Assembly (NCBI GenBank): GCA_000388065.2
Contig: KB932203.1
Strand: one strand, 5' to 3'
DNA from: Fonticula alba ATCC 38817
Taxonomy: Eukaryota > Protista > Nucleariida
Length of the DNA: 57,064 bases
Positions 8,443 through 13,100 of this stretch are shown one piece after another. Both the position numbers and the translations under genes were made by a program. The stretch's first letter is position 1. Each line of letters opens with the position of its first letter. The notes under the pieces were generated by a model. It did no database searches. It saw only the letters and a program-made list of their open reading frames with translations, and had not been told where the DNA came from.

Positions 8443-9948
8443 CCGGGGTGGGTGGCTGGATGCGCGGGGTGACCGCGGGCGCCCGCATGATTCGGGCGAG
8501 GAACACCATTATCACATGCCAACGAAGAGGACACCCTGACCCTCGGCCGCGTTTGTGAGGGGACCCTCGTGGGGTATTTGCTAATATTGTCAGGGGCGCG
8601 CGCGCCGCACCGTCGGGGGGGCCCATCTGTCTGTGCATGCGCATATCTGAGCCATCTTGCTTGTGTGTGGGGGGGGGGAGGGGGGCTGGTCCTTCCCCCG
8701 GGCAAGGGACAAGGAAGGGGGTTGCTGGCCGCGGAGCCGGGCACTGGTCAGGCAGCATTTAGCGGCTTACATCGGGCGAGGGGGTGGGCAGGACGGCCCT
8801 GCTGGTGTCGGGGCAAAGGGTATGAGCGAGGCGCTTGCTCATCGCCTCTCGTCACGGTCCGGCAGCCGGGAGGGCGAGAAAGAGGGGTGGGGGTGCGGGT
8901 GTCCTGGCGCCGCCGGTGCAGGGTTCTCGCGCCTGGGCCCGGCCCCGCCCAGGGTGGCGGCGGGGCATCCACACGGCTGCCTAGCAAAAGGGGGAAGCCG
9001 GCCGGCCAAGGAGGAGCCCAAAAACGTGCGGTCTGGGACACACGTCCGCGACGCCGGAGGATGGGCTACCCGGTGTGCCCCCTCGCCCCCCACCCCGAGG
9101 GGAACAGCGGGGCCAGGGATGTGTCCAGAGGCATCCTCGTGTCAAGCCCCCCAGTCTCCCCCCCCCCCCCCCCCCGTACGGTGCCCGAGCGACATGCTGG
9201 GCGGGAGAACTGGCGCAGACAAGGCCCTCAGGGACGCGTAGGGCGGCGGGGCGAGGGAGAAGGCCGGAGAGGGAAGGGCAGCGCACACCCAAGGGGTGGT
9301 ACGATGGCCTGCCGCTTTGTGTAGCCGATACAGCAGACTTCCACTCTCGGTTTCTTTCCCCCTCCCGATGTTCGCCTTCTCCTCCTCTCCCTCCATCCCC
9401 CTCTCTTTCCCTCAGCCTCCACTCGCCTCCTGTGCCATTTTGCCGTCCCTCTCTCTCGCCCACCTGCTGCCTTTTTCATGCGCCCCTGGTGCACATGTGT
9501 GCATTCCACCCGCCGCATCTGGCACGGGCCAGTCCGTGTCGCGCGTGTGGGTGTGTGTGCGCGCGCGCGCGCACGCCATGTCACGGGGTGGCCCGGAGCC
9601 CCGGCCAGACATTTCGATGCCCGCACATGGGCGCGCCGCTCCTCCCTCCCCTCTCCCCCCTCCCCCTCGGACCCCCTCGGGATGATCACTCCCCCACTCT
9701 CTCCTCCCCCTCCTCCTCCTCCTGCCTCCCTCCTGGCCACCCATTAACGAGACCTGTCTGCTTCCGTGTCCCTCACTCTTTCGACGCCGGTGTCCCGCCA
9801 GTTGGTTGATCATCAGGCTCCTTTGTATGTGCTCTGCCTGCTGGCTCCCCCCCCCCCCGCTGCTTCCCACCACGACCACTCCCTTTGCTCCTCCTCTAAC
9901 TCGTCCGCCACTCGCACGCACCCTCCCTCCCTCCCTCCCAACAGAACC

Positions 9949-11087
9949 ATGTCCGTCCGCCTCGGCCTTCTGGCCCTCTCCGGCCCCGCCCTCTACGCCA
10001 CCGTCTCCTCTGCCAAGAAGATGGAGAACTCCGATGCCCTGCACGCTCCCCACTACCCGTGGCACTTCAACAAGCCGCTCGGCACCTTCGACCACGCCGC
10101 TCTGCGCCGTGGTTTCGAGGTGTACAAGCAGGTGTGCGCCTCCTGCCACGGTCTCTCGCGCGTGGCCTTCCGCAACCTGGTCGGCGTGACCCACACCGCC
10201 GCCGAGGCCAAGATGCTGGCCGAGGAGATCGAGTTCCAGGACGGCCCCGATGAGAACGGTGACATGTTCATGCGCCCCGGCAAGGTGCGCCAACTGGGCC
10301 CCGGCTTGTCCCTCCTCGCCGCGCCCCCCGCCGCCCTCCCCCTGCTCCTCCTCGCCGCGCCCCTTGTTGCTGACTGCCCTCTCCCCTCCCGTCCGCCCTC
10401 CTCCTCGCTCGCTCTGGCACGCGTACATCCGCACGCGCCCGCAGCTCTCCGACTACTTCCCCGAGCCCTACGCCAACGAGAACGCCGCCCGCGCCGCCAA
10501 CAACGGTGCCTACCCCCCGGACCTGTCTCTCATGACCAAGGCCCGCCACAACGGCAGCGACTACCTCTTCGCCCTGCTGATGGGTTACTGCGAGCCCCCT
10601 GGCGGTGTTGAGATCCGCGATGGCCTCCACTACAACCCGTACTTCCCCGGTGGTGCCATCGGTATGGCCCGCCAGCTGTTCGATGACATGATCGAGTACG
10701 ATGACGGCACCCCCGCCACTTCCAGCCAGATGGCCAAGGATGTCACCGAGTTCCTGTCCTGGGCTGCCGAGCCCGAGATGACTGAGCGCAAGCTCATGGG
10801 TCTCCGCGTGCGTGCTCTCAATTGCTCTCGCTCTTTCTCCTCCCCCTCGCGAAGAAGGGGGCGACCCACCGTGCCATGCTGCTGCATCCATATAGCCTGT
10901 CTGCCCCTTTGCTGACGCTGGAATCCGGCTCCCCCTGGCCCCTTCGATGCCATGTGCGCCCCACCACGCTGTGCAGGCCATGGTCCTCATGACTTTCGCT
11001 GCTGCGGCCACCTGGTACATCAAGCGCCACCGGTGGACCGTCATCAAGAACCGCAAGGTCGTCTACAACCCCATGATGAAGAACTAA
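9949..11087 (+). CDS. CYC1: Cytochrome c1, heme protein subunit of mitochondrial complex III
   Basis: Exons 9949-10284, 10445-10807, 10977-11087 (TAA). Motifs: [28 protein letters not shown] (CxxCH heme site), [21 protein letters not shown] (Met ligand), [12 protein letters not shown], and a C-terminal TM helix followed by [15 protein letters not shown]. An extra upstream exon cannot be excluded. Confidence 0.97.
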
Positions 11088-11964
11088 GTCCCCTGCGGCC
11101 CCGCCCCCCCCCCCTTCTGGCGACCACGGCCCCTCGTCTCCCTGGCTGATGGCCGGTCGGTATGTGAGCGTGAGTGTGCGCGCGTGCGCGAGTGTGCCGC
11201 CCTCTGTCTGGGATAGGGACCGCTCTGCTCGCCCTCCCCTGTCTCTCTCCCTCCCTCCCTCTCTCTCTCTTCCGTCGGCGGCGCGCCTCGCCGTTCCTTG
11301 CTCCACATGCACCCATCTGCGTGGGTATCCCGGGGATGTCGATGGCCCGCCACATTCACGCAGGGAGAGGAGCAATTCGCCCCCCTCTCACACCCACACC
11401 CGCGCGCGCGCGCGCGCGCGTGCGCATGTGCCATGTGTCCCCCCCCTCCCCCGCGCCCCTTCCCCTCCGCTCCCTCCCATGTGCTTGCCCATGGCATGGG
11501 GCGTCCCCTGGACGTCGGGTTCGGGAGGCGTCGTGGTGTCACGCGCGCGCGTGTGCTCGTCGCTTTTCAGTCACTTTCTCCCCCCTCCTCTCCAGAACTT
11601 GCCGGTGCATATCCCACTACACACTGGCCCTTCTCCCCTCCCCCCCCCCCTGTACACGAGCGGGGGCATGTTCGACGTGGACGAATGTGTGGCGTCGTAT
11701 ACACTGCCCGCGTAGCACCTCGTCCCATCCCCCCCCCCCTCCTTTCCCCCTCCCTGCCGCAAACCCAAATACACCCCTGTTGTGAAGATTGCCCCCTCGC
11801 CTCCCTCCCCCTCGCGCGCGCGCGCGCGCCTGTCGCATCTCCCCTTTCGGACGGGCGGGAGGGAGACACCCCTGCCCCATGCTTGCTGTGGCCGTGGCCT
11901 CTGGGCGGGTGAAAAAGGGCGAAAGGTGGCTCTCTGTTGCGGCACTTTATTTGTCCTTCTCAGT

Positions 11965-12531
11965 TCATGCTAGGAGGTGCATGACCCGGATGATGTCAGC
12001 CAGGTCTGCGGCCAGGGGCTGGAGCTCCGGCGGCAAATCCTGCTCCTCTGGGTCGGCGCAGAACCCGGGTGCCGGCGCTTCGACCGGCGGGACGGACCCA
12101 TCCGCTCGAAGGATGCGCTCCAGCAGGGCCGCATCCGGCACCAGCGGCGTGAGACGAAGGCCGGGACGCGCATCCGCCCCGCCGCTGGCCGGCCGGGAGC
12201 CCGGCTGCAGGAAGACCGGCGTCACGGGGCGCCCATCGCGAGGCGCTGTCGCCGTCGGCCGAGCCTCGCTCCGCTGCTTCAGTGTCTCGGGCATCGCTGC
12301 GTGAGAGTAGGCGGGGAGAAGAAGGGGCAGGCAAAGAGTACGCCGTCAGTCATCAAGACGCGCCGGCACATGCATACCCGCCGGGCACCCGGGGCCGGGC
12401 GAGATGCCTCCGGCAGAAGACGCACCGGTGTCCAGGCCTGGCGCAGGCTGTGCGAGGGCAGCCGCCGGGCCGGCATTCTCCTTGCTCAAGGACCGCCCGG
12501 GGGCGGGAACAGGGGCGAGAAAGGAATCCAT
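11965..12531 (-). CDS. Small 161-aa two-exon protein with N-terminal KEN box; putative securin (separase inhibitor)
   Basis: Exon 1 is 12531-12378 (MDSFLAPVPAPGRSLSKENAGP...). The intron has a GTATGC donor and CAG acceptor (12377-12297). Exon 2 is 12296-11965 (TGA). Phases match and codons are GC3-rich. VPPVEAPAPGFCADPEEQDLPPELQ resembles the securin segment [25 protein letters not shown]. The gene model is better supported than the family call. Confidence 0.5.
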
Positions 12532-13100
12532 GACGCCAGGGGGGAGGGGCGGAGGGCGAGAGCAGAGAGGGCGAGCAAGAGGAAGAGGGCGCTTGCGGGT
12601 GTTCCCCCTGCCGGCAGCAGCGACGGGCTCGCGGGCGATATTTTTTATTGTTGTTGTTTTTTTTTCCCTGTTTATTGGCCGCCCCTCTCCCCATCCAAAG
12701 CCCCCGCGCCGTAGAACCAGCACCTCCCCAGTGTCTGTCTGGGGGGCGAGGCCGGGGGGGGGGGGNNNNNNNNNNNNNNNNNNNNNNNNNNNNNNNNNNN
12801 NNNNNNNNNNNNNNNNNNNNNNNNNNNNNNNNNNNNNNNNNNNNNNNNNNNNNNNNNNNNNNNNNNNNNNNNNNNNNNNNNNNNNNNNNNNNNNNNNNNN
12901 NNNNNNNNNNNNNNNNNNNNNNNNNNNNNNNNNNNNNNNNNNNNNNNNNNNNNNNNNNNNNNNNNNNNNNNNNNNNNNNNNNNNNNNNNNNNNNNNNNNN
13001 NNNNNNNNNNNNNNNNNNNNNNNNNNNNNNNNNNNNNNNNNNNNNNNNNNNNNNNNNNNNNNNNNNNNNNNNNNNNNNNNNNNNNNNNNNNNNNNNNNNN

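Follow-up and report, generated by a model that had tools for sequence, protein, structure and literature searches.

A spliced and expressed orphan gene of Fonticula alba as a candidate for a highly diverged, securin-like separase inhibitor

Chromosomes separate in an irreversible step that securins control, and the fast evolution of these proteins leaves most eukaryotic lineages without a known representative. Fonticula alba is a slime mould with a basal position on the fungal side of the opisthokonts. A small locus in a 57,064-nucleotide stretch of its DNA (hereafter the window) raises the question of whether a securin-like protein might be encoded there: an earlier note had assembled open-reading-frame fragments at this place into a 161-aa protein with a KEN box, an RxxL motif and a segment resembling the separase pseudosubstrate of human securin. 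We therefore asked what gene lies at this locus, what its product might look like, and how far the resemblance to securins carries.

The gene model was settled with RNA, in the form of assembled contigs from three 2012 runs (two samples) mapped over 9700-12765. These contigs behave as RNA: both GT..AG introns of the neighbouring cytochrome c1 gene are spliced out of them, and their depth over intergenic DNA is zero. One contig per run covers the locus, joining 11938-12296 to 12426-12522, 12426-12543 or 12426-12548. The joint 12296/12426 recurs in the three runs and leaves intron ends that read CT..AC on the plus strand, that is, GT..AG on the minus strand. Transcript contigs and sequence thus agree on a two-exon, minus-strand gene with its CDS at 12531-11965 and a transcript extending from 12548 to 11938 (Table 1), which bears out the single small spliced gene proposed there. 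The RNA-supported model is identical to the NCBI hypothetical protein H696_02151 (145 aa; Fonticula alba; GCA_000388065.2, scaffold KB932203.1), so that the earlier suggestion of an unannotated gene does not hold.

The proposed splice junction also had to be given up. The earlier note had placed the donor at a GTATGC at 12377, which lies inside the true intron (12425-12297). No contig uses it; all of them are cut at 12425 and use GTGCGT, a donor of the same type as those in cytochrome c1. With the contigs of three runs (two samples) joining 12426 to 12296, the 161-aa model was dropped, and the 16 residues GASSAGGISPGPGCPA that it contained are intronic. As the earlier and the corrected models are in the same frame, the true product is 16 residues shorter, its length of 145 aa being given alike by the RNA contigs and the database model. 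The intron, if retained, brings in an in-frame stop. The word depth of the contigs is 111-128 over H696_02151 versus 98-120 over cytochrome c1, a rough sign of abundant mRNA. Raw RNA reads of a further run, filed under a different organism code, did not map to the region and carry no information on the gene. H696_02151 is a real, well-expressed and lineage-restricted gene of Fonticula alba.

Table 1. Features of the H696_02151 locus, in positions of the window
Feature	Position	Strand	Description	Basis
5' UTR, minimum extent	12532..12548	-	contig starts at 12522, 12543 and 12548; no ATG inside	transcript contigs
Exon 1, coding	12426..12531	-	35 codons + 1 base, MDSFLAPVPAPGRSLSKENAGPAAALAQPAPGLDT; ATG is the first in-frame past an upstream stop	
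KEN	12475..12483	-	residues 17-19, context S-KEN-A-G-P	sequence; consensus PMC3690534
Intron	12297..12425	-	129 nt; donor GTGCGT, polypyrimidine tract, CAG acceptor	transcript contigs
Exon 2, coding	11965..12296	-	residues 36-145 and stop TGA at 11967-11965	
RPGL	12154..12165	-	residues 80-83, minimal RxxL	sequence; consensus PMC3690534
Predicted helix	12100..12132	-	residues 91-101 (AALLERILRAD)	AlphaFold2 pLDDT ~80
VEAPAP, pseudosubstrate-like	12067..12084	-	residues 107-112	ungapped alignment; positions PMC6858450
LPPE	12025..12036	-	residues 123-126; opposite human L130-P-E-E133; fits L-x-x-(pS/D/E)	ungapped alignment
Predicted C-terminal amphipathic helix	11971..12021	-	residues 128-144, QPLAADLADIIRVMHLL	AlphaFold2 pLDDT ~90
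AATAAA, polyadenylation-type signal	11946..11951	-	longest transcript contig stops at 11938	

The 145 residues include 25 Ala, 24 Pro and 18 Leu, with two Lys and a single Asn, in keeping with the Pro/Ala-rich and probably disordered character ascribed to the protein beforehand. The ESM Atlas model has a pLDDT of 0.54 and a pTM of 0.16, and a single-sequence AlphaFold2 prediction averages pLDDT 60, stays below 60 over residues 1-89 and forms helices at 91-101 and 128-144. With pLDDT low over most of its length, H696_02151 is predicted to be mostly disordered, and both models are consistent with the intrinsic disorder that securins display when free.

Searches for relatives left the protein an orphan. 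Pfam (securin family PF04856 included), queried at E<=10, yielded no family for either exon peptide or for the whole protein; its lone listing, DUF3682 on exon 1 (E 0.53), was rejected as a low-complexity match. Word matching of the exon 2 peptide against 5.8 billion proteins returned the self-match alone. An exhaustive phmmer search of 1.84 billion representatives returned two hits, the query protein and a tandem-repeat protein from a bacterium, and no true relative; the bacterial hit (E 3.7e-13) was set aside as one chance 13/25 match counted seven times over. Against the PDB, phmmer gave zero matches for the whole protein or for residues 1-45. With residues 100-145, the best matches were designed helical repeat proteins (E 0.65-2), and the human securin chain 7NJ1_B was not retrieved at E<=10. 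Searches of the ESM Atlas by features and by structure (whole protein and residues 88-145) produced only sub-threshold, unrelated rows, and full-text searches of the literature turned up no paper that names both Fonticula and securin. Neither Pfam PF04856 nor the solved securin chains thus place the protein in the securin family; membership is unproven and cannot be claimed, and H696_02151 is, on its sequence, an orphan. Known securins of different clades often fail the same sequence-family test. Securins are known to elude sequence searches (PMC6690013, PMC6743357) and can be unrecognisable even within ascomycetes (PMC6743357). Hence, the failure of Pfam and phmmer is to be expected of a true securin and weighs little against a securin identity.

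According to Cromer et al. (PMC6690013), securins conserve only a region of KEN and D boxes at the N-terminus, disorder, and a patch whose invariant Glu acts as the pseudosubstrate; as far as sequence and prediction can tell all three appear to be present in H696_02151. The KEN that had been noticed is there, near the N-terminus. The KEN-box consensus has Pro at P+3 and Asp/Asn at P-1 (PMC3690534); in H696_02151 the P+3 Pro fits, and P-1 is Ser, not Asp/Asn. The motif takes up one of the two Lys and the sole Asn of the protein, and only 0.08% of composition-preserving shuffles contain a KEN, making it improbable for this composition and more than chance. Situated in a predicted disordered segment, it is a candidate N-terminal degron of the securin kind. 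The mid-protein RPGL is likewise found as claimed. It is uninformative, however, with an RxxL arising in 78% of shuffles and hence not beyond chance. The D-box consensus is RxxLxxxxN with small residues at P2 and P5 (PMC3690534). Around RPGL, P-1 is Ala (not Pro), P2 is Pro, P5 is a bulky Arg and P9 lacks Asn, with Thr86-Pro87 next, so that it would at most be a D-box of poor fit.

The securin-like stretch VPPVEAPAPGFCADPEEQDLPPELQ occupies 12093-12019 on the minus strand, as described before, and the human 25-mer set against it in the earlier note is exactly residues 111-135 of human securin (PDB 7NJ1_B). On recomputation, the count of 10/25 ungapped identities stood, as did the placement of Glu at P4, a non-Arg residue at P1 and Pro at P1': E108 lies opposite human E115, A111 opposite F118 and P112 opposite P119. 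The human register is anchored by the observation that changing F118-P119 to Arg-Glu makes human securin cleavable, and therefore E115 is P4, F118 is P1 and P119 is P1' (Rosen et al., PMC6858450). The P6 residue is acidic or phosphorylated in separase substrates and securin; its equivalent here is Pro106. The patch (S/D/E)-x-E-x-x-[non-Arg] thus has P4, P1 and P1' in register and Pro at P6, and the bare pattern is common by chance. As a rule, pseudosubstrates resemble the separase sites found in the same species. Twelve residues past P1, the same distance as in human securin, follows LPPE. In the human protein L130-P131, with E132 contributing, is a docking motif in which Leu-Pro is most critical, and budding yeast has VPE at this place (PMC6858450). 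In structures published in 2025, a hydrophobic groove takes up the Leu of LPEE and a basic site its second Glu, with L-x-x-(pS/D/E) as the generalised form (PMC12609080). By its sequence, L123-P-P-E126 is a putative LPE/LxxE docking motif of this kind. In all, E108, A111, P112, L123, P124 and E126 fall on mapped human positions, at human spacing and without a gap.

Human securin also features an NxLxΦE motif and a hydrophobic stretch at 136-146 (PMC10317155). NxLxΦE, which has been described for human securin, Scc1 and AIL1, sits between the pseudosubstrate and the LPE. It is absent from H696_02151, where the aligned residues are F-C-A-D-P-E, since the sole Asn of the protein sits in the KEN. 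The helix predicted at 128-144 occupies the place of the human hydrophobic stretch. Only 38 residues separate the P4 Glu from the C-terminus, versus ~90 in human securin, and these correspond to no more than the human core at 113-146, the part that lies along the HEAT-repeat domain being left out; the long C-terminal segment by which securins interact with separase along the whole enzyme is accordingly missing.

How significant the 25-mer match appears depends on the measure chosen. Ten or more identities were reached in 0/20000 shuffles of the whole protein and in 1/20000 shuffles of residues 86-145, and when the window is translated in six frames, the runner-up among its 79,113 stop-free 25-mers has 8 identities. 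The ungapped BLOSUM62 local score of 31, by comparison, was reached in 15/1500 whole-protein, 9/1500 local and 41/1500 human-motif shuffles. The p value is therefore ~0.006-0.03 by BLOSUM62 score versus below 1e-4 by identity count alone. The modest score results from several severe mismatches, such as Pro or Gly opposite Phe. Of the shuffles, 15.5% contain the minimal pattern of these elements, E..[^R]P.{6,16}L..[DE].

From these data we regard H696_02151 as a plausible, though less likely than not, candidate for a securin-like separase inhibitor, its membership unproven. The securin reading of the earlier note thus survives in part: the KEN, the LxxE, the predicted disorder and the in-register core residues speak for it, whereas family homology, NxLxΦE, an acidic P6 and the long C-terminal tail are missing and the D-box is poor. 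In its favour we counted the constellation of a small disordered orphan with an improbable N-terminal KENxxP and a downstream in-register core match, and the order of the elements (KEN, RxxL, pseudosubstrate, LxxE, hydrophobic stretch), which is the human order (PMC10317155). Against it we counted the zero detectable homology and an unbiased PDB search that misses securin; a significance that varies with the metric (BLOSUM p ~0.01, and the frequent minimal pattern); the missing NxLxΦE and acidic P6 and the poor context of the RxxL; and the brevity of both the 38-residue C-terminal part and the whole protein, which at 145 aa is shorter than the securins named in the cited papers. In addition, the searches yielded no relatives that could reveal a conservation of the motifs.

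The most likely single mechanism, which we offer tentatively, would be that of a minimal, highly diverged securin. We infer its functional steps, from recognition by the APC/C to the binding and inhibition of separase, and they might unfold as follows. Before anaphase, VEAPAP would sit in the separase active site as a pseudosubstrate, in an uncleavable form where Glu fills P4, Ala replaces Arg at P1 and P1' is Pro. L123 and E126 of LPPE would fill the LxxE docking site, and the C-terminal amphipathic helix could pack onto the adjoining hydrophobic surface. At anaphase onset, the N-terminal KENxxP would bind Cdc20/Cdh1 and direct the protein to destruction through the APC/C.

The foremost alternative, which we consider possible if somewhat doubtful, is that H696_02151 is a lineage-specific disordered protein outside the separase and APC/C systems, its KEN and securin-like stretch having arisen by chance in a sequence rich in Pro, Ala, Glu, Asp and Leu. 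The segment 'DPEE...LPPELQPLAADLADIIRV' might then be a loop bearing a helix cap, with an amphipathic helix after it that serves a different protein contact, a view with which the unbiased PDB search is consistent in ranking helical repeats (DPExxELAxELxxLA), and not securin, on top. The absence of relatives and of any family in the searches above, the BLOSUM p of ~0.01 and the frequency of the minimal pattern in shuffles point the same way, and a like short ungapped match, 13/25 to the unrelated bacterial repeat protein, did arise by chance. Moreover, the identity count was picked as the measure after the match had been seen. Chance, however, accounts poorly for a KEN that is rare for the composition and is followed by the consensus P+3 Pro, for an identity count far beyond that of the shuffles, and for matched residues that are the mapped functional positions with the human spacing kept.

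The rarity of the KEN and its KENxxP context in a disordered N-terminus could also point to a substrate or regulator of the APC/C of another kind, for instance a pseudosubstrate-type inhibitor or a small regulator of mitosis, with helices that bind a partner other than separase and a fortuitous likeness to securin. Small size, disorder and a lack of detectable homologues are common among APC/C substrates, and the two confidently predicted helices suggest a module that folds upon binding, which the extended binding of securin does not need. We nevertheless deem this unlikely: there is no good second degron, Pfam and the PDB show no likeness to any other known KEN-bearing family, and why the securin core is matched in register would go unexplained.

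Several properties of the transcript bear on the translation of the frame. The ORF starts at the first ATG, in a context with G at -3 and G at +4, and spans nearly the whole mRNA, from 17 nt past the contig 5' end to 14 nt ahead of the AATAAA; its intron is in phase, so that the reading frame runs on over the joint. The GC content by codon position 1/2/3 is 0.80/0.58/0.79 versus 0.61/0.43/0.885 in cytochrome c1, GC2 being the lowest, as in coding sequence, and GC3 not enriched, unlike in cytochrome c1. The mRNA is 71% G+C, and a second of its frames is open for ~139 codons, without an ATG. On the plus strand, an antisense ORF of 245 aa (11977-12714) is exactly codon-aligned to the CDS and crosses the intron; it is open because G+C-rich sense codons seldom yield antisense stops, and the splice orientation identifies the minus strand as the transcribed one over this interval. 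The H696_02151 ORF is thus probably translated, as judged by its sequence properties. That the 145 codons of this real transcript are an untranslated frame, open by chance as long frames can be in G+C-rich RNA, as the open second and antisense frames, a GC3 (0.79) no higher than GC1 (0.80) and the lack of homologues to reveal purifying selection might suggest, is very improbable in view of the first-ATG start in good context, the near-complete use of the mRNA, the in-phase intron, the coding-like GC2 and the want of an ATG in the rival frame.

Returning to the securin hypothesis, we compared H696_02151 with known members. Human securin (PTTG1; 7NJ1 chain B, core 111-146) shares with the predicted-disordered Fonticula protein a KEN-x-x-P near the N-terminus and the same succession of elements from there through RxxL, pseudosubstrate and L-P-x-E to the hydrophobic stretch. 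Their 10/25 identities include the P4 Glu, the P1' Pro and the Leu, Pro and second Glu of LPEE; P1 is non-Arg and the P1-to-Leu spacing 12 residues in both. The human protein is longer, with 202 aa versus 145 aa, and has Glu at P6 where H696_02151 has Pro; the latter further differs in its want of NxLxΦE and its poor D-box.

Like H696_02151, Pds1 of S. cerevisiae, Cut2 of S. pombe and the candidate securin Eip1 of C. albicans belong to the Holomycota side. Pds1 and Cut2 are larger than Eip1, which itself has 325 aa (PMC6743357) versus the 145 aa of H696_02151; the latter is set beside these proteins by description. As with H696_02151, the fungal securins are lineage-restricted, fast-evolving and disordered, and it is chiefly their KEN/D boxes and their binding to separase, rather than their sequence, that identify them (PMC6743357, PMC6690013). 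They were found by genetics or separase pull-down, whereas H696_02151 is known from sequence and transcripts. The plant PATRONUS1/2 and RSS1 offer a precedent for extreme divergence, having been traced through KEN/D boxes and the Glu patch alone (PMC6690013). PATRONUS differs in that it was shown to interact with separase, to antagonise it genetically and to be linked to animal securins through PSI-BLAST. The plant and Candida securins came only from genetics and pull-downs (PMC6690013, PMC6743357).

That H696_02151 is the Fonticula alba securin, with 145 aa shorter than the securins named in the cited papers and with only an N-terminal KEN degron and a core of ~38 residues kept, the latter made up of pseudosubstrate, LxxE dock and hydrophobic helix, is an idea that we entertain with considerable doubt. 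If true, it would mean that the human-type core motif, spacing included, is older than the divergence of animals from fungi and that the long tail embracing separase is dispensable. A Fonticula securin with an in-register pseudosubstrate-LxxE core would help to define the ancestral parts of securins and offer a motif-anchored route to those of other protists, and its 145 aa would show how little protein inhibition needs. Should the candidate fail, it would counsel caution regarding short-motif matches in Pro/Glu-rich disordered proteins.

Several observations concern the surroundings of the gene. H696_02151 lies tail-to-tail with the cytochrome c1 gene (plus strand; ATG 9949, stop 11085-11087), on whose far side is an importin-beta-like gene of 1088 aa. 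At position 10709, within cytochrome c1, the RNA contigs of three runs (two samples) have C where the assembly has A, changing codon 201 from ACC (Thr) to CCC (Pro) in the conserved DDGTPAT stretch; the mismatch could reflect an error in the assembly, a difference between strains or editing. Where the 3' ends of the two genes converge, the interval 11810-11830 holds ~18 nt of (GC)n together with G-rich tracts, to which short unrelated contig pieces align spuriously. Upstream, ~220 nt from the 5' end of H696_02151, there is an assembly gap (12766-13100) with a C-run alongside; beyond it lie two large genes, L001:5246-9121 and L001:1-2692, of 952 aa and at least 1613 aa, without a Pfam family on record. 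Closer in, at 12636-12672, an unusual A/T-rich patch (minus-strand reading aaaaaaaaacaacaacaataaaaaatatc) precedes the contig starts by ~90-120 nt and may be the core promoter.
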